A stretch of DNA of 64,000 nt. Source: Oikopleura dioica. Its lineage: Eukaryota; Animalia; Chordata. The DNA is taken from contig OU015566.1 of NCBI GenBank assembly GCA_907165135.1, positions 558,001 to 622,000 on the forward strand. Reading direction: 5' to 3'. A program made the position numbers and the translations under genes. Each line of letters starts with the position of its first letter. The first letter of the stretch is position 1. Under the pieces are notes generated by a model. It did no database searches. It was not told the DNA's origin and saw nothing but the letters and a program-made list of their open reading frames with translations. This document shows, in pieces, positions 6,695-27,144 of the stretch.

Positions 6695-9613
6695 TTGCTA
6701 CCCATTTTTTTAATGAATTTCTCGAATTCGAACAGTCTTTTTTCAACAGATTTTTTAATGCACCCTTTGAGGCTCAATGAGACCTGCACGGATTTAGAAC
6801 TTGGCGAGATTTGCACAAGCCATTGCGCGGATGAGATTTCCAAATGTATGGCAGAATGTCCCCCGGGCGATGTTTCTTGCGAAAATATTTGCATAAGAGA
6901 TGGGTTTACGTGCGTTGATGGGTGTCCTTGCAATATTGATTGTCCCACAGGATGTCAGGATTGCCCTGCTTTTGTTTGCTCAGCTTGTTTTTCACCTGAA
7001 AACAATGAAGATCATGTCAACTGTATCGAATTTTTCGGAAACGAGCTGAGTAAATGTACAAAAAATTGCGAAAACGAGCTTTTTCGTTCTCTTTGTCAGG
7101 ACCAATGTGATCAAGAGTATTTTATCAATATTGAAACCTGCCCTTGCGAGCCCGGTTGCCCAGACGGATGCCCATGTCCAAATTACGAATGTGAAGAATC
7201 GAGCCTTGAGAAACACGGAGCTGTTTTGGTCCTTAAGAGATTCAGAATTCCAAGAAAACCTGTTCTTGTGAATTTCGAAAGCTTTACAACAGATTTATCT
7301 GTAATATTTAATTTATTGATTTTGGGTAAAAAGGAATTTTAAGGTATCTTGGTACAACAACGGTCCAGAAAATCACCAATACTACCCTTTAGATGGATGC
7401 TCAGTTTTATACAAGGATAAGAATTATCTGTTTGGAGGCTACACTGCTAATATAAATGGCACCTTGATAAGTTACGGGCCACATATTCTTGATGGCTGTG
7501 ATATTGTAAAGGCTGAAGGTGTTTCTTTTTATCACGATTGTGATTTAGGCAGGGATGAGAGAATGAACGTGTCAGGCGATTCCGTTTGAAATCGTTTTTT
7601 TTTCTCTTCTAAGAGCTGCGCTCGAAATTCTTTCAATTCATATATTTATATTTACCTCACAAAATTTCGAATTTTTAATCTTAGAAATACATTTAAGATA
7701 ATGAAGTCGATTGCCTTTTGATAAGGAGATTTTTAAAAAATTAAGAATAGGAAATCTTTCATTGTCAATAAGTCTTCGACCATTTTATTGGTACGGCTTT
7801 ATTTTCATATTTACTTCGGGCGAAAAATGAAACAAAATACTTGGTGCTTTAGCTACCATTTAAATAGATAAAAAAGGCATTTTTTTCTTCTTTATAGCGG
7901 ATGAAGCGAAAGACAATCAAAATAACGATTTTCAAATTATATCTTGACAGCTCTCATTTGGGTTGCTGATATAAAAGGACATAAAAAATTATCTCAGAAA
8001 AATAACCGATTGCATGATTGAAGAAATGCTATTCTCTTACCCCTTGTTAGGCTCAGTGGGATATCTACCAACAGTTGATGATAAAGAGGCTTATATAATG
8101 CTCTATGACGGTGAAATGAACAATGTCCAAGCGTAATACTTCTAAAAATTTATCAAAATTAAAATATTAAGATATGATGGACACGCAATTCTTGAGGCTG
8201 AATTTTGGGCGCCAAACAAATATCATTCGAATACAGGAGGTCATATCCCTATTTACAAAGAGAAACCTATACTTATTGGGGGAATGTCGGAAAATTCTGT
8301 CGAGACTTTCAGGTGAATTTATTATCGGCACATCTGTAATGTTCCCGATTTTTTTTTTTTAATTTTCCATATTAATTTAGTTTCAGCAACTAACTTTAAC
8401 AAATTTAAAAAGTTTTCTACCACAAATCGGATTTCAAAAAGACAATCTTAACAAACAAGCGGACATAACAAACAAAACGGACGAAAGAAATACGGAAAAT
8501 TTCAGTAATTTAGAGCATTTAATGAATATTTACATAAAATCACGTGCGGAGCGTATGTTGAGTGGCGGGCGGCTTCGTTTTCAAAGGCCATTTTGTAAAC
8601 GGCGTTCACAAATTACGAGCGGCGTTCGCAAAATCGAAAGTTTTTTGGCCGAAAATCGTTCACAATTTTTTTTCAAAATGTGTCCCAGCGGTAGAAAAAA
8701 CTACTCCTGCCACGCCAATGAGTTCCCTACAAGAAAATGCGCAAAGCGCACACTCACGGCAAGATGATTTTTCATTGCGAACGGCGTTCGCAAAATTACG
8801 AATTATGTCGCAAATTGCGAACATAGCCGCCCTACACCCCGTATGTTTTCTTATTGATTTTTGTGGTTCGCGCCTGATTTGATAGATAAAATAATTTTCA
8901 AAAGAAAATTTCGGGTTTTGGAAGAATTTTCCGCCGTTTGAAATGTGCATTAATTTGTAATGTACGCTTGTCTGTAATGTCCGTCTATTTGATATGTCAA
9001 TTTTTGCATAAATTGCGCGGAGGGCTTCCTAATTTTTTATTTTATATCAAAAGCAGTAACGTTCTAGGAACAGAAAAATTGTCCTGACTAATCACTGACT
9101 AGTAGTCAGTCAGACGAGTTTGACGAATTAAGGTGCAACCATTTTTTAAGCTTGAAAAATGAATGGACTGAACACGAAGATCTAGTATTTCCCGATGGAG
9201 ATATTGAATCGTACACCACAGTCTGGGGAGACTTTGGTGTGGTCGTTTTTCCTGGAAAATCAAGGTAAGAATACGATATCTATTGAACCCTGTTTTTTTT
9301 AGATCTAACGAAAAAATATGGCGACTTTTTGATGATAAATGGACGAATATTGGAATAGTTGCTGGTGAAAAAACAAGAAGAGCTGCTAGATCAGTTCTTT
9401 TTCCAAATAATGAGGTTGAGAAATATTCGTTTATTTTATAAAATTGCGTAGGTTATGATGATCGGCGGTTACGATAACCAACAATTCATCAAATATGCCT
9501 TCAACGATGATTTTACTTCTATAAAAGGAGAAATTTTAGAAGACCTTCCTTTTCTTGCAGAATACGATTTCCCTTATGCGATCTACGTTGAAAATAATTT
9601 CTGCACAATCTGA
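6695..9613 (+). CDS. Secreted Cys-rich (CPC..CP.GCPCP.YEC repeats) plus Kelch beta-propeller protein; multi-exon
   Basis: Two Cys-rich repeats in ORF 6695-7342. Downstream exons read GCSVLYKDKNYLFGG and VMMIGGYDN...YAIYVENNFCTI*, i.e. GG-containing Kelch blades. The start is uncertain. Confidence 0.75.
8440..9000. repeat. Intronic inverted-repeat (MITE-like) element with internal cggcgttcgcaaaat repeats
   Basis: gggcggct (about 8567) and agccgccc (about 8825) are inverted; cggcgttc(a/g)caaa occurs three times; the outer ggacat/atgtcc arms are also inverted. Confidence 0.5.
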
Positions 9614-9888: not shown

Positions 9889-12800
9889 TCACAGTGATAT
9901 GGTTTCATTGCAGCGGTAATTCAAATTGCTCCAAATCACATTTTCTTGGCTAAAATCAAGCACGCCCAATCGCCCGCCTTGAAGAGTCTTGTCGATCACG
10001 TGACCGGAGTCGATGATTTTATTTTCTCCTTGGAAAATTTGCACTTGAATGAGCCCAACACTCGGGCGATGACGCAGCACCCAGCGATAAGCGGTGAAAT
10101 CAGTCCAGCCGATCTTGTTCTCATCTTCCCAGAGAACTTTCACTTGCCCGGGAGTGTCTGATCCGTGCCAGAGAGCATTACGAAGCAAAGGACCGGGACC
10201 AGTTGCGGAATCGATGAGCTTGATCTGAAGACCAGTTGGAGCCACAGAGCGAAAGGGAGAAGGCCACCAGTAGGTTTGCTCGACCTGTTTCCACATCACA
10301 CTGTAGAAACGGGAAGAGCTTTGGAAGCTGAAAACAAAGCCGACGAAATCATCATCGGTGTCAGTGTTGATGTAGACGGTGCCACTGTAGTCAACGCCTG
10401 TAAAAATTTACGATAAAAAATCTTTTATTTTTTTTTTATAAAATCATACCTTGAACATTATGATTTCCAATCGCTAAACCAGGATCAGCATTGACCGACT
10501 GTATCAACTCTCTTCCTTCATTCAGCACAATCCAGTACGGATCAAGTTGGCTGGAACCTTCTGGGTCGAGTAAGATAGTTTCGTAGCCGGTAAATGAAGG
10601 AGAAGAAATGAGCGCATCCATTGGACAAATATCAAATTCATCAGGAGTTCCGTCGCCGTCAGAATCTGGTCCGCAGCCGAGTTGTTCAGGATTGTAGACT
10701 CTCGGGCAGTCGTCGACGTCGTCAGGGATTCCATCATCATCATCGTCGTCGTCGCAGATGTCGCCTACGCCGTCGAGGTCGAAATCAGATTGGTCAGCAT
10801 TCGCCGCTTCCGGGCAGTTGTCTCTTTCATCTGGAATTCCATCGCCGTCTGTGTCGACAACGACGCAGGAGTCATCTTGAGAGGGATTGTAGATCGTCGG
10901 GCAATTGTCGCAGTCATCTCCAACTCCATCATCATCGTCATCAAGCTGGTTTGGATTCGGAAGTCGGGGGCAGTTGTCGATGACATTGGTGATTCCGTCG
11001 TTGTCGATGTCATCATCGCAGGCGTCGCCAATTCCGTCGCCGTCGCTGTCTTCTTGGCCGGAGTTTGGAATGGTCGGACAGTTGTCTGCGCGACAGGTTG
11101 TGTCTCGGCAATTCAAGACTAAAATATAGAATGAGCGTTTGAAGAATTTTTCAATTTCTTACCTTCATCAGGGAATCCATCCAAATCAGAGTCTTTTCCA
11201 CAATTTTCTTTGCCATTTCCAGCGAAGCCAGTTGCGCAGACACAGTTGTGCGACCACGTGTCCTCGGCGAACTCGCAAATTGCATTCTTCGCACATCCAT
11301 TACAGTAACTAAAGCAGCCCACTGTCTGATTTCCAGTAAAACCGAGCATGCATTCGCCACATTTAAAACCGCCAGCGTAATTGAGACACTCCGAGTTTTC
11401 TACGCATCTGCCTTTTTTATGGTCTTTTTGAGAAATAAAAGAAGTAAAAGCTCTAGAATTTGGACCATTCCTTGTTCGCATTCGTCAACGTCGAAGCAGT
11501 CGATTCCATCGCCTTCGAATCCTTCAGGACATTCATCACAAGTTCCATTTGTGCAGCCGCTCCAGCAGATATCACATTGATCCTAGACTCATTCCAATTT
11601 TATCTTTCTTCCATTTTTACCTCTAAGTACTCGTATTCGTATGACTCATCCTCATCGTAGTAATAATCATCATAATCTACCTCATCTTCTGTACAATTGT
11701 GTCCATCGCCAAAGTAACCAGTCGGGCAGTTGCCACAAAAAGCTCCAGAAACCAGATCAGTACAGCTGACTCCCGGAAAGCATGGCAGAGAAATGGGTTA
11801 GAAAATTATCAAAAACATTTCTTTAAAAGTAAGACCCGTTTCTCATCGCTGCAGTAGATTCTAGAGTCGATGCAGTTCAGACCATCGCCTTGGAAATATT
11901 CAGGACAGAGAACGCATCGGGCCCCGCTTTTTCGGTTTCAGAAAATAGTTCTTTGAAATCAAGGAAGAAAATATTCGATTCAAAAACCGATCCTTTCGTC
12001 CTCCTCGCAAGCATCATGGCAAAATAACTCCGCACAGGTGGCCTTCATCATCTCTTTCTCTTCAATCTCTTGACACGTGACTCCATCACCAGTAAATCCT
12101 TCAGGACAAGGCGCGCACTTTCCACCATCAAGACTTTCAACACATTCGCCAAAACACTCCAATTGGGCGCAAGCGAGTCTAATTTTTCGTTATTTCAAAT
12201 TTCCAACATCTTATTCTGTACCCTGTTACGTAATGTGTGAATGACCCTTTGGGAGATATTTTCGTTATTTGAAATAAAATCCTGTTGCGAGTAACTGTGC
12301 AATTGAATCCGTCGCCTTCGAAGCCTTCTGGGCAGGGATCGCACTCGCCACCGGTCTCCGTATCGTTGCAGCTTGAGAAACAGTCTTTGTCTCGGTCAAT
12401 TAAGGAAATAAAAATGAATTGTTATTGTTCATTCCCTCCGTAAAAAAAAATAAAATAGAGCACTCTTGTATTTTCATCTTTTTGACCAATTCCTAAATCT
12501 TCGCAAAAGACCCTGGTATCCTCACAATCGACCCCATCGCCAACGAAAAACTCCGGGCACTGATCGCAAACACCCCCACTGGGCGTTTCTTCACAATCCC
12601 CAAAGCAGTCCATTTCCTCGCAATGAATTCGCTCATCTTCGCAAATCGTTCCATTCCCAGCGAAAAATTGAGGGCACGGCTCACAAACGCCTCCAGCAGG
12701 AGTTTCCGAGCAATCGCCAAAACAAGTCAAATCAGGGCAATGAGTTCGGATATCTGTACAAATTGTTCCATCGCCAATGTAATAATCAGGACAGGGAGCG

Positions 12801-15800
12801 CATTTGCCGCCATATTCACTATCAACGCAGTCAGAAAAACAGCTCATTTCCGAACAAAAAACTCTCGAATCCAAGCAGTCGAAACCATCCCCAACGAAGA
12901 ATTTTGGACAAGGCGCGCAAGAAAGACCATCTTCGGTTTCAACACAAGTCGAGTTGAAACAGCCCAAATCTTCGCATTCTGGCTCTTCAAGGTGAACGGC
13001 GCAGTAGGTTCCATTTCCATCCATTCCTTCAGGACAAGGATCACATTCGCCGCCGAATTCGCTTTCTGTACAAGTCGAGTAGCATTCGAGCTGATCGCAG
13101 TGAACTCTAGAATGAGGGTCTCTATTAAAAAATGGCTGATTCTAGAAAAAAATTGTAAAGGAATAAAATTTTCACAAAAAAAATGCAAAATATGTTGAAA
13201 ATCTTGGAGACCCAAACTGTAATCGATGCAATAAGTTCCATTGCCTTCAAAATAAACAGGACAAGGATCGCAAACGCCGCCATGTTCCATTTCCGTGCAG
13301 CCGCCAAAGCAAATCAATTCATCGCAATGAGTTCTACTATCTTCACACGTCGTTCCGTTTCCGCTGAAGTATTTGGGGCACGGATCGCATTGGCCGCCAG
13401 TTATGAAATCGGTGCAAGTGTCGTAGCAGTCCATTTCGGCGCAGAAAACCCGCGTATCTGTGCAATTGATCCCGTCGCCTTGGAAGAATCGAGGGCATTT
13501 TCCGCAGCGAGGGCCGCGCGGAGTATCGCGACATACTACTGAGTCGAAACAGGTGGAATCGGTGCATTTTATCGTTGTGCAGTCAAATCCATCGCCTTAC
13601 ATTTGAATTTATTAAAACCAAAATTTTTAAATAAAAATGATGTTTTTGATAAAATTAAAAAAATATTGTGAAAAGGAGATTTACCTTCAAAACCATCAGG
13701 ACATGAGCCACACTCGATCGCTCCATCAGGTCCGAGATCCGTGCACTTGACTCCCGGCCAGCACGGATTCGGCTCGCAACCAATTCGACTACAGTCAATC
13801 CCATCGCCAGTGAAACCTTCAGGACAATCTCCGCACATGTAGCCAGATTTGACTTCAAGAAGTTTCAAGTCATAACCCGCATATTCTTCGTATTGCCCGA
13901 AGTCTTCGAAAATCCTCATTGCACGAGTAAGATTGGCTGAAATATCGAAGCATTCGACATCTGGAAAACAGGGTCTATCCTCGCACGTGATAAATCGGCA
14001 ATTGACTCCATCTCCAGTCATGAATTCCGGACAATCTCCACAAACTACTTCTCCTTCCTTTCCATAAAGACAGTCCACTCCTGGATAGCAAGGATCATCG
14101 TCGCAGAGAATCATTTCACAGCTCCTTCCATCTCCTTTGTACCCTTCTGGGCAAGGTCCACAATTGATTTTTTTCTCATCAATTTGTGAGCATTCAACCA
14201 AGTGGTGGCAAAGTCCCATTTCACAAGTCTCAATTATTTCTTGGCAGTCTTGGCCGTTCCCAACGAACCCTTTTGGGCAATCTCCGCATCGAACGCCAAG
14301 CGGATCGTTTTCCAAACACTCCACTCCGGCAAAACATCGTAAATCCTCGCAAGTAACCGGGCGGCAGTCGAGTCCATCACCAATCATTTCTACAGGGCAC
14401 ACTCCGCAAGTTACAGTGCTTCCTTCTTCTGAGCATTTCACGCCAGGGTAGCATGGATTTTCAGCGCAGACTAGGGGCTCGCAGACTTTTCCATCCCCTT
14501 TGAACGCTTTTGGACAGTCGCCACAGGAGTACCCATCTCTAGAATCGTGACAAACTACGCCTGGAAAGCACGGCTGATCAGAGCAAGTGATGGGCAGGCA
14601 GGTCTTTCCGTCTCCTTTCATATTTATCGGACAATCGCCGCAGACTGGCCCCTTTTTCGAATTTTCGCACGTGACTCCCTGATAACAGGTCTTTTTCGAG
14701 CACAGTTCTTCTTCCATTTCGTCGGTGTAGTCTTCCAACACAACCGTTCTCATCTCGCTAAATCGCTCTCGATTTCTAGAAGCTCTGCTTGAAATAAATT
14801 CTGGGTCCTTTTCGCAACGAGTTCCATCTTCGTCATCGATGCAGATTTCGCTCTTTTTGCACGGATTTTCTTCTTCGCAAGTATCCGGAGTGCACCTGCC
14901 TCCTTTGTTCTTCTTTCCGAATCTACATGGAACAACGATGTCTTCTTCGATCATTATTTCGTCGCATTTTTCGCCGCAACCGTAATCGTCCGAGGCGTAT
15001 TCTTCCTTGATACACGTGATTCCATTTCCAACGTATCCATAAGGACAGGCGCCGCACTCGAACCCAGGATCGCGATAGGAGTTGATGCAGGAACTTCCTT
15101 GAAAACAAGGCGATGTTGAGCAACTGGTGTGGTGGACAGTTATTTGGCTCTGTTGCAGCGTTGCCATTGGCCCGTTGAAATTCTGCTGGGTCTGATCGAA
15201 GTTTTGGTTATTGTAGCCATATTGGATATTTGGCGGATTGGTGGGCGTCTGCGCGGGGAAATTCTGCGGCGGAATTGGATTATTCCAAGTCATTTGAGCA
15301 GGAGGGTTTCGGCCAGCAGGGGCGAGGCGCAAATTCCTTGGATTTTGAAAAACTCCTGGCTTGATTTCTGGCTGCTGGAGGCTGGTGCTGCTCGCGCCTA
15401 TGACAGGAGACTGGTAGTTTCCCGTGGGAAAGAGATTGTGAGACGTTGGAGGCCGGAGTTTGGACTCAGGAAAGTCGACGAAATCGGGCTCTTCGAAAGC
15501 TTTTTCTTGCCCGCCGTTTCCTTCTCTCGTGAAAGGAGGTGGAGTTATTGCGCGCTGAGTTGGTTCAACTGGTGGATCTGGGAGAAATTCAGAACCGTAG
15601 GTTTCAGGTTCAGTTTCGTACTCGTACTCTTCGTAATCGTACTCATCTTCATCGTAGTACTCGTACTCGGGCGTTGTCGTGGTCGTTGTTGATTTTGTTG
15701 TTGGAGGGCGAGTGGTTGTTTTTCGACGTCGTTTTTGTTTACGAGTTGTTGGATTCGGGACGGTTGTTGGGATCTGGGTCGTTGTTCTTGTGGTCGTGGT

Positions 15801-17434
15801 TGATGTTGTTTGAGCCGGTGGTGCATCAAGATGGTCGATGTTCGGAACGGTGAAGTTGAAGTTTTCAACTCCTGTTTCAGGATTCGACAGGTCGCAGTTC
15901 CATTTTGAATCTGGCCTACAAGTGCATCTCAAAACCGATCCATCGTCAGCAGTAACAACAGAACTCTCTCCTGGTCGATAATTGAACGATTCTTTTGAAC
16001 AAAGCGAGTAGCAGTTCACTTCTCCGCGATCATCGCATCTGCACTGCTGATTATTCCCGACATTTACGGTATCTTGGTGCCGGACGATTTTTCCCTTGAT
16101 GATGCAGCCAGCGTTCTTCTTCATTTTACAGTCGACGCTTGTTTGGCCATTCGAGTCTAGTAGACAGATACAGTCTTTTTTGTTGGCAGTCCATGTTTCG
16201 CCAACTTCTTTGATTTTTTCGGATTTTCGGTCGATGCAAAATGGTCGCCGCTCTTTTGACTTGTTTCTGATGAAGCACTCGGTCCGGAGCTTTCCGTTGA
16301 GATTTTTGCACGCGCATTGGTAGTCCTTGTTTTCCCGCTAGAATAATTGTTAGAATGAATTTGAAAAAATACTTGTTTACCTTGGATTGCCAAGTTTCAC
16401 TGGGCAAAAACGGAACTCCCGGCATGGTACCATCATAACAAGTCCTAATCTTCCCCTTCGGCGATTGAAATCCCGCTTCGCTCGGTGTCCTCGCTCCTGC
16501 TGGGCGCTGATTATGACTATCACACCTCCAAGTCGCCTCATTTCGCACCAGAACGCACTGGCACTTGAGCATGTTTCCATTTCCCATGTTTCTGACAGCA
16601 ACTTGGCCGGGTTGATAAACGACTCCATTTTCGACGCAACCGGATGGCGGAGGCTGCTGGCAGGTCATCTGATTTGCTGCTGGGCAATTGCAGTTTGAAG
16701 TTCCGGGATTTTGGGGGAAATACGCGCCTTGGGGTGGTCGCTGAGCCATTTGGGGGTTTCCGCAAGGCGAATTCGAGAAGCCTCCGTTTGGAGAATAAGC
16801 AGGTTGAGGAGGGGCGTAATTCTGCTGACAAGGAATTTGTTGAGAGCAGCCGACGCAAGTGAAACATGTGTACATTCTGCCATTTGTTTGCCACTGTCGC
16901 TGGACTACTCGAGGGTCGAAGGCGGAAGGAACTTGCGGAGGTATCGGCTGTTGAAGATTTTGAGTCGGCTGATCGTTTTGGTAAGGAAATTGATTTTGGG
17001 TGGAAGGGAAATTTTGATATTGCGTGTTTTGCTGAGTGTATGCGGCGGAGTTCTTGTTTTGGATAGAATTTTGGATACGAAAATTGAGTCAAAAGAGACC
17101 TGAAATGGAAAAATTAATCAGCTGAATAAAATTTTTATCGAAAAATTCCAATACTTTTTTATCTTTCATGATTTAAGTCTATCCGTGCCTTATTTTTTTT
17201 CTTGTTCGATCCGCCCATATTCAGAGAAAAATCAACCTGATGCGCCATCGTCGGAAAAACCGATCTTTCCCTCTTTTGCTTGGCCAATTTTCTCTCCAGC
17301 TTTATCGCTTTTCTTATCGCTCGGTCGTATCTTATCGTGAGTTTTTGCTGAAGTCTCATATTTTTTTCGTGTAGTTCTTTATTCGTCAATTTCGAATTCG
17401 CCAGCGACAGTATTAAAAACTGCCTCAAAATCAT
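9889..17434 (-). CDS. THBS: Large thrombospondin (COMP/TSP-type C-terminus): signal peptide, basic and Q/P-rich region, 5 Fn1-like modules, T/P-rich stalk, more than 20 EGF-like repeats, type-3 repeats, L-lectin-like C-terminal domain
   Basis: C-terminal domain aligns by eye to COMP (WKQVEQTYW, LRNALWH, GGRLGV.FSQENVIWSNL.YRCN), with DxDxDGxxDxCDNCP type-3 repeats and CGxCPxGxxGDGxxC EGF repeats. Signal peptide MILRQFLILSLANS at 17434; its junction to the 17.1-kb exon is unresolved. Confidence 0.93.
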
Positions 17435-17954
17435 TTTATCTATTTTTTCTTGTTTTCAACCCTCTTCGTCTTGGGCTGAGAATATGAATATCCCGCTGCG
17501 AGGAGAATTAAAGGCGGATTTTTTTGGTTCTGTTGACTTAGGAAATTACAGGCGGTGGCGCTGAGTGGAGGCGATAAGGGGTTATGGGGGCATATTAACA
17601 GGTATGCGCGGAAAGAACAAGGATGGAAAATGTGTGAGACGGGGAAAGATGAAGGGAGTGGTAAATTCATCTTTTGGGGCGGGAGCTTGTTTGACCCCTT
17701 GTTTTGAGGGCATCTTGGGCTCATTATTTATCATGAATTTAAAAGTTTGAATTTAAAAAAAGTTAAAATCTTTCCAATACGTATTCTACGGAAATCTTCA
17801 TATTTGCACTTGCTCGCCACGCTGCCCTTTACTCTTTTATACGTACCAACTTTGACAAATTTGGTTTTCAACAAATATAAAATGGAACTATCGCGGAGTT
17901 TTCACTTTCGGCATTCACTCGAGACGTCTGCACCGTCTTTTGAGGAATTAAGAG

Positions 17955-20900
17955 ATGAAACTTTCGCCGGCGATTTTCGCAGCGCTCGAAGTCGCAAGTG
18001 CTCAGCGGGATCCTTGGAGGCTTCCAACGTAAGAGATTACATAAGAGATGTATTTCTAGAGCTAAATTTTCGGCTGACTGTTAGGAAAATATTAAATTTT
18101 AGAAAAAAATCTTTTGGTTTTTTTGCCTAAAAATCTCTAGAACCCTTGACCCGCTGCACTACAACATCCGAATCAAAGCCTACCTCGACCCAGAAGACCA
18201 AGGAGAAGACAATGACACGATCAACTTTCCAGCCAATACCCAGCAGCATTTCGACGCTTCTGCCAGGATCAAGATGAACTGCACCGAGCCAACTAGCGAA
18301 ATTATTCTCAATAGCTTGTATCTCGATTTTGACGCGGGTCAAACTTCGCTCAAACGAGGAAATGCTGACGTCAAAATTAATTCCGTCGTTTTTGATAATG
18401 ATCTCGAGCAAGTGACGATTTCGCTTGATGAGGAAATCAAGGAAGAGTACCAGAATCAGAATAATTTCAAAAAATTAAAAATTAAAAAAAAACTATAATT
18501 TCCACTAAATTCTATTTTGAGCTCTAAAAGATCAACGAAGAAATCGACCTATCAATCGATTACCGAGGATATCTCCAGCCCAACAACTTCGGTTTCTACA
18601 TCAGCTACTACGAAAACGAAGGAGTCCGCAACTACGTCGCTTCTTCTCAAATGCAAGGCCCATACGCTCGTCGAGTTTTTCCCGGCTTCGACGAGCCCGG
18701 TTTCAAAGCTGAATACTCAGTAACGATGGAATACCAGCAGAAAATGCCCTGGTCGAATCTGGACTACTATCCTCTTTCGAATATGCCATACAAAGGGCAG
18801 GCAGCGTGCAACGGAAATTGGTGTACTCAGGAGTTCGAGAAAACAGTGAAAATGTCAAGTTATCTGACTGCGTTTGCGATTGTTGACTTTGGCTCGGTGA
18901 ATACGGAAACCTCTGTCGAAAAGACTCCAGGCGCCGGGTGAAATTTCACAATGTTTGACCTTTTTTGGCTATAAAAAGCAATCTTCCTACAAAAAATTTT
19001 GACATGATCTTTTGACAACGTCATTTTGAATTTTACCCAAAAATAGCAAATCTATATGCTCGCCAACAGCTTATCGGCGAAAAAGACCAGCTGATGTCCG
19101 CCACTGGAACTGACAACCCAATGTGGTTCCCAGCAATTTCCACCGAACGCGTTACTGACCAATTCGGCAGCGTCCTCCGAAGCTACAAAGACATGGGCGT
19201 CGAAAAAGCTGATCAAATCGCCCTGCCCGATTTCAACGCCGGCGCCATGGAAAACTGGGGATTGGTGACTTACAGAGAGCAAAGCTTGCTCTACGACATG
19301 AATCGAGATCGATTCGACAGAAAGTTCTACGTCGCGAATGTTGTTAGCCACGAGATGGCGCACATGTGGTTTGGCGATTTTGTCACTTGCCAGTTTTGGG
19401 ACGAGCTCTGGCTGAATGAGGCTTTTGCTACTTTCATTTCTTATGTCGGGCTTGAGGAGAATAGGGATTCAAACAACTCAGTGAGGGAGAGCCTGAAATG
19501 GAATGATGATTCTAGCGTGGGAACATGGGATTTGAGGTGATTTTGAATATCTGGGTGAAAATAAAGGACGAGTTTTTTCTTCGTTATTTTCGTTTTTAGG
19601 GTCTTCGAAAAAAACTGCATATAAAAATTTTCCCCTTCATTATGGTTTTTTCAGCCGAAGTTTTATCGCAAATCGCTATCCAGCTGCCCTCCAGCACGAT
19701 CAAACCACTTCTTCGAACCCAATCGTCAACATCGAAAACAACAACGGCAAGGTCGAAGGTCATCCCCAAGCCGGTTCCTCCAACATCATTTATTCCAAAG
19801 GAGGAATTATTCTGAAGAACATTCGCTGCTTCCTCGGCGATGAAGTTTTCTTCGGCGGCCTTCAGGATTATCTCGAAAAGTTCAAATACAGCAATCCTGA
19901 TTCTTACGATTTGACTCAGGCCTGGGAAGACAAGCGAAAATCTGTCGGAAAAGACACCGAGTCGGAAAAGTATGACGAGTCGATTTGCGATGGAATCGGA
20001 TTCAATCAGAAATCAGGCGTTTTGATGAGCGGCAAAACGGTCGGAGAGCATTGGGATCCTTGGCTGCGGCAAATGGGCTACCCGTTCCTGACCGTGAGCT
20101 ATTCTGATGACTCATCAAAAGCAGGAATCAACGTCGAGCAAAAGCGATTCCTCAACAACCCTGACGATGACGCTTCCAATCCGCCATCGAAGCTTAACTA
20201 CAAATGGCCGATTCCTCTCCAAACTGCGTTCAAAACGAACGGAGCGATAAAATACATGGCTACTTGGATCGAAAACGGCTCGATCGACTTTGCTGAAACC
20301 AGCGACATCGATTTTGCGATCGTCAACGCCGACTACGTCTCGTTTTTTAGAACAAAATATGATGGGCAAATCCTCGAAGATCTGCTCAATGTTCTCTCCG
20401 TTGATCATACCGAGGTCCCATCTTTCTCCCGCGCTAATTTTGTCGCTGACTATTTCGCCTTCGCCGAGAATAAGCCACTCACCGGAGTTGACATTACTGA
20501 CACTTTTGAGTACACAAGCTTCATGGCAGAAGAAACTGACTTTGTAGTCTGGAAGATGTTTGATCGAGCAATGTCGAGTGTCAGAGGCATTTTGAAATAT
20601 ACTGATAGCAAGGAAGAGTTTCCTCGATTGAATTTGAAAATTTGAAAAAATGATCAATTTGGTAAGAAAGAGGTTAAAACTCAAACAAGGACGTTCTGGA
20701 TGGCTACCTTAGCTCATTGGTTCAAAAATACTACGACAACTTTGGCTACAGCGTTGACTTGTCGAAGATTGTTGACATGGATCGGGAGGCGATGAATTTG
20801 GCTCTGCTCATGTCCTGCCAATATGGGTAGAATCTGCTTTTCTGATCAAAAAATATTTTTTCAGGAACGCTGATTGCTTGGCCAACTCAAAGTCGTTGAT

Positions 20901-21631
20901 TGAAAAATACGACGGAAGTCTTCAAAATGAGCCTGATCGAGATCAAAAGCTCACTGCTTATTGCTATGGAATCCAAGGTTAAATCTCTTCTCATCTTCTT
21001 ATTGTAACTGAATTTCTAGAATCCGGCCAGGGAGAATGGGACAAGCTCTGGGCAAGCTACGCAACCGAGCAGAATGCGAATGAGCTGTACTCAATTCGAT
21101 ACGGTCTTGCCTGCTCCAAGGACCCCGCTACGATCAAAAACTGGCTGCAGCTTATCAAAGGCGATGATATCCGAACTCAAGACAAGCATACTGCCATCAA
21201 TCAAGTTTCAGGAACAGAAGTCGGAAGAGACCTCGTCTGGGAGTTTATTGAAGAAGAATGGCAATGGATCAAGGTAGGCTCTATCAACCTTCTTTTCTTA
21301 TCGCTTCTTTCAGGACAAAACTCTCCAAGAATCCTGGACTCGCGCTTCTTCCATCATTTCTACTTGCACGAGCACTTTTTCCACCGCCGAGCTGAAACAA
21401 AAAGTCGCTGCTTTTCGAAGCGCAAAATCAGCTGACATCAAACAAATGGGGCTTGAAGGCACATTCGATAATGTCATGACTACAATCGACAAGAACATCA
21501 AGTGGCGAGAAGAGAACGAGCAGAACATTGTCAACTGGATCAACGAGAATGGAAATGCTGGTGGAGATAGCGGAGATGCGGCTGCTATGGCTGCTTCTGT
21601 CTTTTTTGTTCTCGCTTCGATTTTGCTTTAG
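17955..21631 (+). CDS. ANPEP: M1 aminopeptidase N-like metallopeptidase with cleavable signal peptide and GPI-type C-terminus
   Basis: [24 protein letters not shown]|[10 protein letters not shown]; [11 protein letters not shown]; GAMENWGL; HEMAHMWFG-x-WLNEAFA (HExxH-18x-E); C-terminus [27 protein letters not shown]. Confidence 0.95.
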
Positions 21632-21837
21632 AGAAATAAAAATTGAGAAGCATATATTTTTATCCTCGTGATAATTTTAGCTCATCAGATTCTCCTTCAA
21701 ATTTCGCATGATTGTGTGTTCTTATTTTTGGGCAGATCAATTTATTTGCATTTCTATTTGTTTGGTCGCTGCGTTCTACAAATGTAGCTTTTTTACTCTT
21801 GCCGGCCAGAAGGAGAGAAAAAGTAAAGATAAAAATA

Positions 21838-22679
21838 ATGAAGCTTCTTTTTTTGTTCGTCGGGCTGAGCATGGCCGGAACAAAATGCTCCGGAGACATG
21901 TGCTGGGCTCAAGAGATGAGAGGACCAAGGTAAAACCTGTCAAAGTTTTTATTAAAAAATACATAATATAAGACCCCGACGAACTGAGAAAAGCGACGAA
22001 TGCTCAATTGATGCGCACAAAACCAATCCCGAAAGCTGGAACATGAACTGCCCTGACAGCTGCGAAATCATGCAATTTCTCGAAGTCGTCGAGCGAAAAA
22101 TCAACGAGGAGTGGGCTCAAGTCAAGAGCAAGTAAGGAAATTTCAAGAGAAAATGAATCTTAATTTTTCAGCTTTGAGGTCAATTACGGAAAAGCTGGAA
22201 TGGACGGAAGCAGACGAGAAATTCTCGAAATTCTCTTGATCAAGCTCAACAAGATTAAGAACTCCTCAATGTTACGGATTTTCAGAAATATTCATAAAAA
22301 AACTTTGAGCTTTTTCTTTAAAAAAGAATTTAATTGAGCAAAATTGAGACAATTTATGACAGAAAATATTTGAATTTAAAATCCGCTGAAAGTCCGAAGC
22401 TGAAAAATTCAAGGCCTACATGAAGCTCTACAACGATGCCAACGTTCCGCGAATCATTCTCGAGCAGGAGAAAATCACTGCGAATCTTGAAGAGCGACGA
22501 GCAAATCTTCACTCTGAGCTTATCTGTAGGCTCCTTTTTTTATCTTTACGTTTGAATCATTTTTAGCTCTGAAAATCGAATTGAACAACAACATCGCCTT
22601 CTGCCTGCTCAACTTCAAGGAATATGGAGAGCACATTTGCGACGTCAGATCTTACCAATACGGACAAGGAGAAATCTAG
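21838..22679 (+). CDS. Small secreted fibrinogen Aalpha-like coiled-coil chain (about 190 aa, no FReD); 5 exons
   Basis: Exons 21838-21929, 21973-22131, 22172-about 22255, about 22393-22525, 22567-22679, with GT-AG introns of 43, 40 and 41 nt (the exon 3/4 junction is uncertain). Protein: signal peptide, ...EMR-GPR..., WNMNCPDSC, heptad coiled coil, LKIELNNNIAFC. Confidence 0.8.
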
Positions 22680-22828
22680 AGATGTTTTCTGAAAGAATAA
22701 ACTTTGATTGTCGATTCGAATAAATTTAATGAAAATAACCCATATAATTGGAGAAAATAGATTTTTAAGAAATTTAACTGTCAAAAGAAAGAAAGTAAAA
22801 AAATCTGGGATCTTTATAAAGCGGGTTT

Positions 22829-22961
22829 TCAGCATAAAGTCAATGAAGAATCTTCGTTTGAGATTACAGAGACTTACCAATAGTCCAGCAAGGCGGACAA
22901 AAGCACACTCCGCCGCGGCAAGTATGCGAGCATCCACCGTTATTGCCATCGTAACAGCTTG
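22829..22961 (-). pseudogene. Orphan EGF-like exon (SCYDGNNGGCSHTCRGGVCFCPPCWTI) plus a short DSSLTLC* exon; relic of an EGF-ZP gene
   Basis: Phase 1-1 exon 22878-22961 with cttag acceptor and gtaagt donor, homologous to exon 57759-57845. The next exon matches DSSNRTC but stops immediately. Confidence 0.6.
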
Positions 22962-24082
22962 CTAAGACGGCACTTACTTGAAGAAGGAGTCTTTTAGTGT
23001 TGAAATTCTTGTTTTTTTTTACAAATGTTGTACGCTAATCGATGCTAAAACCTCAGCATCCGTGTTTTCTACCTTTTAAGATAAATCGGCACCCGAGAAT
23101 TTTCCAAATTTATTTTATCGTTAAAAATTTGTATTTTCAACTTTTTCTAAAAAAACTCTTCATGAATCACTACTGAATTCTTTTTTTCTCATGACCTTCT
23201 AGGGCAAAATCTGCTGCGTCAGCATTAAAAAAGTGAAGAGGTTGTGGTGCAGCTAGGGACGATATGAAAGTACCATCACGAAAAAGCCTCAGGTCAGAAT
23301 TTAACTAATTTTGTCAGGTTCTGTTAAACACGCTTATAGAATTGTAACAAAAACTTTTTGTGAAAATTTACCGAAACTTTATTCTGAAGAATTTGAGGTT
23401 TCTTGCGCACGCTCTGCTTTAAGCTTTTTATCTTTTCCTAAATTCTATGTTTTGGTCACAGCCGGAAGATAAGACTCTAGTAAGTAGAGTCTAGTTTCTA
23501 TGTTTCGGGCGGTTTCGTAAAAAGAAGGTGCATGGGATAAGCCTGTCTACCGAAAACTCGTCTTGGTGAAAACCAAGTCCTGTTTCTCGTGAAATTTAGC
23601 TGAACCAAAAAGACAGGATCTACGCTCCAAGAAAAAATTGGCTAAAGAAAGTGGAGAGAGACGGTCGAAGATTTAAAGATTTCCAGGAGTGTACGGTTGC
23701 TAAATCCAGTACTTAGAAGCTGTTGGTTTCAATGTTTCATCGTGAAAGATGTTCATTTTATTTCTGAGGAGTTGATTCACAAAAAAGCGCATATTAAAGA
23801 TAAACGAATGGTTTATAAAAAATATACACAATATATAATGAATTATTGAAAATTATATAAAAAATTTGTAAAAAAAGGAGACGAATATAAAATTCTTTTT
23901 AAATTCTAAAAAAAATATGAAAAAAATTGTCTTACGAGTTTTGTCATCTGTAAAATATGCCGTGATAAGGTGACCCTTGTACGATTTCTCGCGAAAAAAA
24001 AAGAAATGCAGCTCTAGCGCCGCGAGCGCCGTCTGTTCTCCATATAAGCTTCAGCCTGCCAAGTCTGGCTAGCATTTTCAGA

Positions 24083-27000
24083 ATGAAATTGTCTGCTGCT
24101 CTTGTTTCCGCCGTGAGTAAAAGAAGAAAGAGATAAAAATGTGATAAATTATATACAAATTAAGGTAGCCGCGAGAAAATGGAATCCCTTTGGCAACAAG
24201 CAAAAGCTCTTGTCTGTCCCAAAATCTGCTCAGGCTCATCGTGATGCTCATGGTGACCAGGGCGAATATGGCGATCTTGTCGTTCAGCCATGGCAAGTGG
24301 ACATCCTTGTCAAGCACGGCTACGATGCGGACAAGCTCAACGTCGACGAAACTGCGGGAAACGACCCTCCGAACGGGCGAGGACTAGTCACGTGGGCGAG
24401 AAAATGGAACGTCGTGGATTCGGATGGAAAATTCGTCGTCCCCTACGCAATCCAAAATACTGTTCCTTCCGAGCACTGGCAAACGATTCATGATGAGCTT
24501 GCGGACTTCACCCTCGCAATGGGCTGCCTCAAATTCGTCTTTGATCCAGATTTCACCTATGATAATGGTGTTCACATTGCCGGCGAGTCATCGAACGGCA
24601 GCGGCTGCTGGTCTTTTGTCGGTCAATGCACCGGTTGCTCAAATGGTGTGAGTGGAATTCACTCCGGCTGGCAAGCTCTTCGACTTCCAAACTGGTGCAT
24701 TGGGGCTGGAGGCATTCATCACGAGTTTTTGCACGCGATTGGATATCTCCACGAACAGGATCGACCAGACTGGGCTGACTATATCACCGGCGGCGATGTC
24801 GGAGATATCTCCAACGACGTCTGGTTCGAGACTGGGCATCCCTTCGAGCCATCTTCAAACGTCATGTATAGTGGATTCACGCTCGTCAACGGCCGCAGCT
24901 ACAATCCTCACCCCCTTCTCACCACAACCGATGCCGAGCAAGGATATCTCCTCTACTGCGAGGGAAAAGAACAAACCCACCCGCTGGAGCCAAGATCGAT
25001 GTGTCTCGAACCAGATGTCGTTGACGTTTTAAGACCTGTCTTCCAGCACAAATTCTGCGACGGCTTCAAAGACTGCCTCAACGGAGAAGACGAAGACGGC
25101 CGTCTTGCGACTTGCGCTGAGGGTGAAAAAACCGCGCTTGGTTGCTGCAAAAATCTTAACATGGACTTCTTCGGACTTGGCACTTGTGTTGCCGGTGGCT
25201 CAATCGTCAACGGGAAAGACGTCTACACTTGTGACCATCCATATATAATAAAATGGCAATGGAGCTCGTCAGGTGGATGTAGGGTCCGGCACGATTAGGA
25301 CAGAAAAATTATTTTTCAGAAATCTTCAACTGTGGCTAAAATGAGGTTTCGGAACTCATTTCCGGCCTTTGATTCTCCCCAAAACTCCTCTTTTCATCCC
25401 TTTTTAGGCTTTCAAAAATTTCTTTACTTGAGAGGCTGCTGCGCTCTGATTGGTTCGCACAAGTCAGAATTTCTTCTAGACTCGAGATTCTTCTTTTTCA
25501 AAATAAATGTGCGGACTTCAGCCAATCAGCGCGCGTTAAACATTTTAATTCTAATCGTTATAAACTTTAAAAGTAATTCACAAGAAAAGTCCAGTGAGTT
25601 AGAATAAGTTTCAAAAGCAAATATTATTATTTTTTATTTCTCTATCTAAAATGACTAGGCCTGGAATTGTGAGCGACCTAGAACGCAAAATAACCGAGAG
25701 AAATCGGCGATTTTGATTTTCAGTCGGGATTCTGATTGCACCATTTTATTTGGCGTATTCAAAAACCCTAGAAACATTTCGATTTTTAGGGGGCTCATAC
25801 TTTTTTGGCCTTTCAAAAACTTGGGTCCTCCGATCGTGTCGGACCCTAGGTGGATGGACTGGTTGCGCAAACGACTCGTGCAGCAGCAGATATACGAGGA
25901 CTGGAAACGGAATAGCGGATGTGCCATGCTTTGGCGACGCTGGAGAATTTTCCTCTGATTTTCAATGGGACGGCAACGCTGTCAGTAGTCTCGGTTGTCA
26001 GTCTGGCGATGGACCTGCTACTCCTACTCCCTGCGCTGATCACAATTGCGATGATAATCAACGATGCGTCAACAACGATGATCTTTCTGGATACACCTGT
26101 GAGTGCCGAGATCCAGTTAACAAACCCTGTGCGACAACAACCACCACTTCTACCACCACAACGACCACAACAACTACGACTACAACAACAACGACTTCCA
26201 CAACAACGACGACGACGACAACAACAACTGAACCACCAACTTGTCCTCCGACAACTGGATGTGATCCAGCCTGCGAAACTGGTTAGATAATGTCTTATAT
26301 AAAAAATACTAATCTTCATGAGACAGAAATTAAATCTCATTGTAGGATTCACTTGTTTAAATGGAGAATGCATCGATGAAGATGAGTGTTCCACTGGCAA
26401 TCATAACTGCCACTCCTATGAAAACTGCGCAAATCTACCGAACGGAAGAGGGTACAAATGCGAGCCAGGGAATCAAGAGTGCCAAATGCATCACAAATTT
26501 GCTGAGTGGAAAGGAGTAAGTCATATTCTTATATTTTCTCTTTACTAACTGTTTCTTTTCTCAGCGCCAAAACGTCAAATACATCTACAAGGGAGAAGAC
26601 TCCGTCATGCTCCAAGTCAAATTTCGATCTAAAAACAGATTCGTCAATCCCCGATCCGAGCTCTACAAGGGTTTCGTTTTTTGGACCAAAGACGTTTGCG
26701 GAATGGACTTCATGAAAAAACTTCGAAGCGGCGAAGTTCGAATCGACCTTGTCGACACAACCGATGTTTATCGACTCGGTGATGTCTACTTCCGAGATGC
26801 TGCGAAGTACACTCACGCTGGCTTTGAGTTCGAGTTGACTCAACTGGTCGATAAGGACACCCCTTGGGCTTTCAAGGGCGGCGTTGCTACTAAAAATATG
26901 GGATCTGACGATGTCCAGGTTATTCTCACCGGTAAGGACGAAAAAAGCGAAGCAAATATTGAATATTTATTTTCAAGGGCTCAAGGATGTCCAGTGGATC

Positions 27001-27144
27001 GACGCTAAGGGCCGAGACTGGTGCCTATTGACAGCTGCTAATGCGATCGTTCCTCTTGAAAACAGCGATTTCCCAGACTACCATATCATGTGTCTTGCTG
27101 AAGCAAAGACTTTCTGGAAGTCTCCTTCGGATCCGAATGCATAA
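24083..27144 (+). CDS. Astacin-family zinc metalloprotease with LDLa-like module, EGF, Thr stalk, calcium-binding EGF and an unrecognised C-terminal domain
   Basis: Signal MKLSAALVSA|VAA; HEFLHAIGYLHEQDRPD (HExxHxxGxxHExxRxD); GCWSFVG; FCDGFKDCLNGEDE; Thr run at about 26130-26230; DEDECSTGNHNC. Confidence 0.9.

Follow-up and report, generated by a model that had tools for sequence, protein, structure and literature searches.

An Aα-like coiled-coil chain with a conserved Arg-Gly-Pro-Arg-Pro motif and no fibrinogen-related domain in the larvacean Oikopleura dioica

The stretch of DNA analysed here, referred to below as the window, comprises 64,000 nucleotides of the Oikopleura dioica genome (assembly GCA_907165135.1, contig OU015566.1, positions 558,001 to 622,000 of the forward strand); coordinates are those of the window unless a locus is named. 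On the plus strand, positions 21838-22679 hold a gene of five short exons separated by introns of 40-121 nt. Its spliced product is a secreted, Cys-knotted, all-helical protein of 198 amino acids (aa) without a fibrinogen-related domain (FReD). In layout it resembles the N-terminal half of the fibrinogen Aα chain, and it carries the sequence Arg-Gly-Pro-Arg-Pro (RGPRP) ahead of the knot. A first-pass annotation of the same DNA had spelled out this spliced protein, and the gene encodes it as written there. The annotation also supposed a larvacean source, which is borne out by an O. dioica Okinawa model, OKI2018_I69.chr1.g61 (P0046), that is identical to the window over exons 1-2 and ends after exon 2 at 84 aa.

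Four RNA runs were mapped onto window positions 21300-23100, and the evidence for the exon joints came from contigs of run X1, an environmental oligo-dT marine metatranscriptome. All four joints were supported by these RNA-derived contigs, and the transcripts are spliced and in frame. Exon 1 (21838-21929) contains the start codon, the signal peptide (~aa 1-14), a Cys-containing pre-motif peptide (aa 15-28), and Arg28-Gly-Pro with the first two bases of Arg31. X1 contigs span 21818-21929 and continue into exon 2 as had been predicted. Judged from the sequence, the RGPRP motif (aa 28-32, within 21919-21976) is interrupted by intron 1, its codons lying at 21919-21929 and 21973-21976. Intron 1 (21930-21972, 43 nt) is of the GT..AG type, and the loose ends of X1 contigs at 21929 and 21970 continue exactly in the partner exon. 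The tether is encoded in exon 2 (21973-22131), as are knot Cys41 (22001-22003) and the ring W-N-M-N-C-P-D-S-C (22037-22063), and the helical rod begins in the same exon. Intron 2 (22132-22171, 40 nt, GT..AG) is removed at an X1 joint from 22131 to 22172, the shorter side of which has 93 letters. The rod continues through exon 3 (22172-22270), which includes ..RREILEILLIKLNKIKNSS.., and exon 4 (22392-22525), which X1 contigs span in full. Intron 4 (22526-22566, 41 nt, GT..AG) is closed by an X1 joint from 22525 to 22567. Exon 5 (22567-22679) encodes the end of the rod, the sequence F-C-L-L-N-F with Cys174 (22602-22604), which corresponds to the first ring-2 Cys in fibrinogen, Cys186 (22638-22640), and the stop codon. 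A likely poly(A) signal, AATAAA, is present 17 nt 3' of the stop codon (22696-22701), and an X1 contig reaches 22734. All of these features are on the plus strand.

Intron 3 (22271-22391, 121 nt) is non-canonical: its ends read GT..AA, or TT..AG with a one-base shift. Canonical splicing of exons 3 and 4 was considered and rejected; an in-frame GT..AG pair is absent, and the contigs show a non-canonical junction from 22270 to 22392 with 2 ambiguous letters. The resulting join yields ..KIKNSSMSEAEKF.., and the identical join occurs in P0028, an independent full-length orthologue from a marine transcript catalogue (82% identity over 195 residues). The exon 3/4 splicing, which the first-pass annotation had singled out for confirmation, was thereby resolved. 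In the Norway orthologue, the intron 3 junction is of the same kind (GT..CA or TT..AG; L014:10748-10845). That orthologue is represented in public databases by two truncated "unnamed/uncharacterized" products, CBY06838.1 and CBY38945.1 (P0011, P0002). Because intron 3 is non-canonical, every public model of the gene falls short of 198 aa: P0046 has 84 aa, and 118 and 139 aa are the lengths of the two Norway products. Three organism-labelled RNA runs from 2026 (X13-X15) had almost no reads on the gene, and those present were 90-95% alike. Since such reads point to another O. dioica lineage, from which they probably come, the near-silence of these runs is uninformative on expression.

The Norway orthologue has a further peculiarity. 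Its exon 3 is broken by an insert of ~220 nt (L014:10495-10727) that the window lacks. The ends of this insert form inverted repeats of 15 nt (93% complementary), and it is bordered by a 7-nt direct repeat, CATCAAG. It is MITE-like (resembling a miniature inverted-repeat transposable element) and must be spliced out as an extra, non-canonical intron.

The 198-aa product contains seven Cys, at positions 17, 22, 41, 57, 61, 174, and 186. The signal peptide of ~14 aa is followed by a 14-aa peptide with two Cys, and then by Arg28-Gly-Pro-Arg-Pro-Arg-Arg, in which GPR occupies residues 29-31. Next come a short linker, Cys41, the ring W53-N-M-N-C57-P-D-S-C61, a Cys-free rod, Cys174, and Cys186. The first-pass annotation had put the distance between the rings at 106-112 residues; the actual number between Cys61 and Cys174 is 112. 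It had further stated that the second ring has only one Cys. The second ring-2 position is indeed Phe, but a further C-terminal Cys (Cys186) exists. Its statement that FReD is absent agrees with our Pfam results, and the chain terminates 12 residues past Cys186.

Structure prediction with AlphaFold2 (AF2), using orthologue P0028 and the family alignment, gave a monomer in which helix, broken briefly at three points, extends between rings 1 and 2 (pLDDT 58, pTM 0.34). A confident compact tertiary arrangement was not obtained in this model. A Foldseek search of the model against the PDB returned nothing significant; fibrinogen alpha held ranks 6 and 18, which are meaningless at E>1. ESM Atlas look-alikes of family member P0015 had a best score of 0.68 and were uninformative. 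The low-confidence predicted monomer fits a chain that needs partners, and is weak evidence for such a need.

A phmmer search with exon 2 against 1.84 billion representative sequences, together with one single-protein search and two profile searches, recovered a family with about 50 members, 170-260 aa in length. Marine metatranscriptomes and metagenomes are the source of almost all; the O. dioica entries make up the rest. On a 3.1-kb metagenome contig (L002) the gene has the same compact build, with multiple exons and very small introns, from which we infer that the metagenomic members belong to other larvacean-like tunicates. The window protein scored 136.8 bits (E 7e-42) against a family hidden Markov model (HMM) built without O. 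dioica sequences, whereas 200 shuffled versions scored <=3.2 bits. In the family tree, O. dioica is on a long branch.

Every lineage has one RGPRP-bearing and one RGPRP-free paralogue. In O. dioica, the motif-less paralogue is P0057 in Okinawa (PAR.g9937) and P0058 in Norway, the latter under the automatic UniRef name "Fibrinopeptide A". These proteins of 170-172 aa share with the window protein the C-terminal C-x11-C and 67% identity in the C-terminal part, and their top Pfam match is Fib_alpha. They differ from it in lacking RGPRP and the Trp before the ring, in having a shorter N-terminus, and in being encoded on another chromosome. Database annotation notes the Fib_alpha likeness for the motif-less paralogue only. 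Within a lineage, paralogues with and without the motif have 64-88% identity in the C-terminal part (P0012/P0015, P0016/P0017, P0025/P0026, and P0057/window protein), whereas chains of the same type have 21-72% identity across lineages. This pattern is one of concerted evolution (gene conversion) or repeated duplication. The retention of one chain with RGPRP and one without it in each lineage would be expected if both chains work together.

One motif-less gene, P0016, lies on a 927-nt transcript contig (SRR27980856; L001:1-788) in which the end of an unrelated open reading frame (ORF) is followed 33 nt later by the complete gene. This contig could be a polycistronic (operon) transcript.

Profile searches were performed to determine the relation of the family to fibrinogen; the window gene was represented in the Pfam and PDB searches by pieces of its exons, by P0046, and by orthologue P0028 (82% identity). 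The relevant Pfam profile, Fib_alpha (PF08702), has a length of 143 and a gathering score of 29.9 bits. Fib_alpha was the sole Pfam match of exon 2 alone (18.6 bits, E 0.0023), and it scored 17.5 bits with P0046 and 24.9 bits with P0028 (E 2.5e-5, profile positions 9-132 of 143). Three family members exceeded the gathering score: P0025 (32.0 bits), P0026 (36.1 bits), and P0027 (32.9 bits), over positions 10-134 of 143. At E<=0.01, Fib_alpha was matched by 25 of 26 family members, with a best E of 8.9e-9. Membership of the window protein in Fib_alpha thus follows by transitivity, through its place in the family HMM and the three relatives past the threshold. When family profiles were run against the PDB, fibrinogen alpha came first (human, bovine, and chicken; best E 8.9e-5), followed by gamma and beta. 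Fibrinogen chains filled 11 of the top 12 positions, the sole intruder being a designed helical protein (8fjg_A), and they held almost all top ranks in three separate PDB profile searches. The profile match to the fibrinogen coiled coil that the first-pass annotation proposed was therefore recovered, both in P0028 and in the family at large.

The alignments are anchored on Cys and Trp rather than on heptads. In a phmmer search of the PDB, the ring motif of exon 2 aligned to WNYKCPSGC of fibrinogen alpha. The knot Cys of the family (Cys41 in the window protein) aligned to human Cys28, and it is followed by a first ring of the form C-x3-C. Window residues W53-N-M-N-C57-P-D-S-C61 aligned to human W41-N-Y-K-C45-P-S-G-C49, as did the family sequence S-W-R-T-N-C-P-S-G-C. 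Alignment with bovine alpha (1deq_A) extended end to end, from the knot to ring 2, where FCKVSF of the family lay on SCKGSC. In human chains, the spacing from the second ring-1 Cys to ring 2 is 112-113; counted from the same Cys, the next one follows at 111-114 in nearly all full-length family members and at 113 in the window protein. Expressed as residues between the rings, the rod had 110-113 in the family and 112 in the window protein, as expected for a rod of ~111-112 residues.

Compared with the N-terminal half of vertebrate fibrinogen Aα (3GHG_A, 3H32_A, 1DEQ_A, and 1M1J_A), the larvacean chain is likewise secreted, has a short N-terminal peptide ending in Arg and followed by Gly-Pro-Arg, a linker to the knot Cys, a ring W-x3-C-P-x2-C, a rod of 111-112 residues between the rings, and the first ring-2 Cys at the same place (CK.S), in a chain without FReD. 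The differences are also clear. Overall identity is very low (profile E 1e-4 to 1e-5), human Cys36 has no counterpart, and both the alphaC region and the fourth, back-folding helix are absent. The larvacean pre-motif peptide is shorter and contains Cys, and the motif is a fixed RGPRP followed by Asp or Arg. Angiopoietins, ficolins, and tenascins are also secreted, coiled-coil oligomers that serve as matrix or recognition proteins; they carry FReD, whereas the window protein does not. To our knowledge, none of them has paired disulfide rings ~112 residues apart. The family is very probably homologous to the fibrinogen knot and rod, and closest to Aα, with a modified second ring and without FReD or alphaC.

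Exact RGPRP was present in 24 of 47 collected family sequences, in all four deep clades, where motif-bearing members are interleaved with motif-less ones. Path lengths among RGPRP-bearing members exceed 4 changes per site in the tree. The conservation that the first-pass annotation had called for was evident, RGPRP being kept by further O. dioica lineages as well as by highly divergent members of the family. The motif is all-or-none: near-variants were not seen, and it is otherwise absent or decayed (GSRPD, FGPRPG, without Arg). A set of 21 non-redundant sequences was chosen for having RGPRP, so invariance within it proves nothing alone; the all-or-none distribution is informative. In this set, the residues before the motif vary (..AAS, ..DGA, ..IEG, ..QEM) and the residue directly after it is Asp or Arg. 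Counting from the predicted signal-peptide cleavage site, RGPRP lies ~7 residues on in most members and 11-14 in O. dioica (14 in the window protein).

The position of the motif in the chain was also compared with that in human Aα. Arg-Gly-Pro-Arg is N-terminal to the knot (residues 28-31, with Pro32), and the order of elements is collinear with human Aα: signal peptide, short peptide, R|GPR, linker, Cys, W-x3-CPxxC, rod. By our own rough estimate, the chance of RGPR within about 60 residues is ~5e-4. The first-pass annotation had stressed that the offsets from the knob Gly to Trp (24) and to the first ring Cys (28) are identical to those of human Aα. This holds for the window protein, but the argument built on it fails. 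From the motif Gly to the first ring Cys there are 28-77 residues in the family, with 29-31 for O. dioica lineages other than that of the window and 38-77 for the rest of the family, across a tether that is often Pro/Thr-rich. Because the offset varies even among O. dioica lineages, its identity with the human value is a coincidence.

Partners with FReD holes were searched for in several ways. Neither a second family copy nor an FReD pattern was found in the window, and a PROSITE-type pattern scan for FReD was negative for the window and every fetched locus. Pfam showed no FReD (PF00147) in any family member examined. No relative bearing FReD emerged from a profile search started from a longer first sequence, which recovered only the motif-less paralogue of O. 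dioica. A metagenome scan for a partner returned only contigs of 1-2 kb, without neighbours. A paper on the Oikopleura house proteome named no fibrinogen-like or coiled-coil protein, and family peptides were not in its supplements, which may omit sequences.

The genes flanking the Aα-like gene include two encoding peptidases. An M1 aminopeptidase gene (Peptidase_M1, ERAP1_C; about 17700-21631, plus strand), whose product has a hydrophobic C-terminal tail, ends 206 bp upstream. In Norway it is still adjacent to the orthologue, inverted relative to the gene (L014:11227-20594, minus strand). A gene for an astacin-EGF metalloprotease (24141-27144) begins 1.5 kb downstream. The Okinawa motif-less paralogue also adjoins an astacin-EGF gene (L012:5864-8854). 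The two Okinawa astacin genes are collinear and about 40% identical (tblastx E 5e-47), and gene order differs between the loci. Astacins favour sites at which P2' is Pro and P1' is small, for instance Gly (PMC3186203), and the Arg|Gly-Pro bond matches this preference. A conserved fibrin-matrix gene cluster was considered and set aside; the astacin gene is shared by the Okinawa paralogues and missing beside the Norway orthologue. The astacin linkage is suggestive and unconserved.

Fibrin polymerisation consists of the docking of thrombin-exposed GPR and GHR knobs in FReD holes, and is regarded as a vertebrate invention. We propose that the larvacean Aα-like chain may take part in a comparable step. 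Together with its motif-less paralogue, and perhaps also chains that carry FReD, it would form a parallel rod of several chains clamped by disulfides, with RGPRP displayed on a tether of variable length, often rich in Pro and Thr. An extracellular protease would then cut between Arg and Gly. The candidates are a trypsin-like enzyme, with Arg at P1, and an astacin such as the one encoded downstream. The freed Gly-Pro-Arg-Pro end would dock in a pocket of an FReD protein and link molecules into a polymer or matrix. The outcome would be a fibrin-type knob-hole step without thrombin. GPR is knob A of fibrin, for which the peptide GPRP is the standard mimic (PMC7186824, PMC3501649). A knob function for RGPRP is plausible on this likeness, and we advance it tentatively. 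Taken whole, the reading of the gene as a divergent Aα-like knot-and-rod chain with a working knob mechanism has, in our judgement, somewhat less than an even chance of being correct.

Several results weigh against this proposal. Exon 2, P0046, and orthologue P0028 all score under the Fib_alpha gathering score. The C-x3-C of the second ring was not found: the family has C-K/L-x-S/N-F where alpha has C-K/R-G-S-C, the second ring-2 Cys is replaced by Phe, and the next Cys follows 12 residues on, in an invariant C-x11-C. In most members a Cys lies 3-6 (usually 4) residues before the motif Arg; it is possibly disulfide-bonded and may hinder release of the short peptide. The Pro at +4 and the Asp or Arg at +5 are constrained as well, which suggests that a longer motif is recognised, possibly one that stays uncleaved. 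The astacin gene is not beside the Norway orthologue. Finally, an ascidian relative must be taken into account. A three-chain fibrinogen-like protein of Ciona is described, in the passage of PMC8037105 that cites Doolittle 2012, as a full-length fibrinogen molecule without thrombin cleavage sites. As so described, it resembles the larvacean chain in coming from a tunicate, in having the fibrinogen coiled-coil architecture, and in belonging to an animal whose blood does not clot by means of thrombin. It is set apart by the description in that it lacks thrombin sites, whereas the larvacean chain has R-GPRP and no FReD. If that description holds, homology of the larvacean motif with knob A needs a loss in ascidians; otherwise the motif is convergent.

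The explanation that competes most strongly with a knob function is that the protein is a fibrinogen-type coiled-coil matrix protein in which RGPRP is a conserved short linear motif, its likeness to knob A being convergent. RGPRP might serve as an uncleaved docking site for a matrix or house component, or as a processing or sorting signal; alternatively, the cut might fall at another site, such as ahead of the Asp found directly after the motif in most clades, which would suit BMP1/meprin-type astacins. We regard this explanation as a serious possibility, although we would not give it even odds. It accommodates the constraint beyond GPR, the Cys ahead of the Arg, and the shortness of the pre-motif peptide, ~7 residues in most members. 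Cleavage before Asp is common among astacins (PMC3186203), and astacin genes adjoin both Okinawa paralogues. The absence of thrombin sites reported for the Ciona protein in the passage quoted above points the same way. However, chance would hardly produce a five-residue identity with R|GPR(P) at the corresponding place of a homologous chain, as the rough estimate given above for RGPR indicates. The Arg before Gly is invariant, as expected of a P1 residue. A cut before Asp cannot be general, since the +5 residue is Arg in O. dioica and clade I. Furin-type cleavage (R-x-x-R, then Pro) was considered separately and is unlikely; Pro follows the site, and the dibasic residues are not conserved.

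A second alternative denies homology and treats the family as an unrelated, lineage-specific secreted coiled coil, such as a house protein, with a CPxxC that arose by chance. The scores of the window protein, its orthologue, and most members under the Pfam threshold fit this view. Coiled coils draw spurious low-complexity matches, of which the designed protein 8fjg_A may serve as a reminder, and the Atlas and Foldseek searches gave nothing specific. Against it, three members do pass the Pfam threshold, and Fib_alpha is the match common to 25 of 26. Fibrinogen chains dominate the top ranks of all three PDB profile searches, and it is Cys and Trp positions, not heptads, that produce the matches. 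The family and fibrinogen line up at both rings, with ring-to-ring lengths that differ by no more than 1-2 residues. We therefore consider an unrelated coiled coil improbable. An annotation artefact or decaying pseudogene, which the truncated public models, the non-canonical intron 3, and the near-silent organism-labelled runs might suggest, is more improbable still, given in-frame spliced transcripts at all joints in environmental oligo-dT RNA, a full-length orthologous transcript product (P0028), an intact frame with strong conservation against the family HMM, and labelled-run reads so divergent that their silence says little.

If the knob mechanism does operate, knob-hole polymerisation is either older than vertebrates or evolved twice. 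Larvaceans would then have a protease-triggered, fibrin-like assembly in which a protease other than thrombin, of the trypsin-like or astacin type, exposes GPRP for FReD pockets. We judge this wider scenario less likely than not. Were it true, the polymer could seal wounds or allow rapid assembly of an extracellular meshwork such as the house. In our literature search, a larvacean fibrinogen-like chain, the family, the conserved RGPRP, and the two-paralogue pattern were not found described. The family is thus new to the papers searched, and public models of the gene have been truncated by its non-canonical introns. An alpha-like chain from the other main tunicate branch bears R-GPRP at the homologous place, in a deep and abundant family. 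Whether the knob preceded thrombin, and which protease and hole served it, therefore become testable outside vertebrates.

Two other coding regions in the window were recorded. A thrombospondin gene with TSP_3 repeats, TSP_C, and a long N-terminal part occupies 9889-16900 on the minus strand, and includes two large ORFs of 851 and 249 aa without a Pfam match. At 6941-7200 on the plus strand, another reading frame contains a Cys-rich repeat (motifs CPTGC and CPDGC) that is part of a different gene, unrelated to the family described here.

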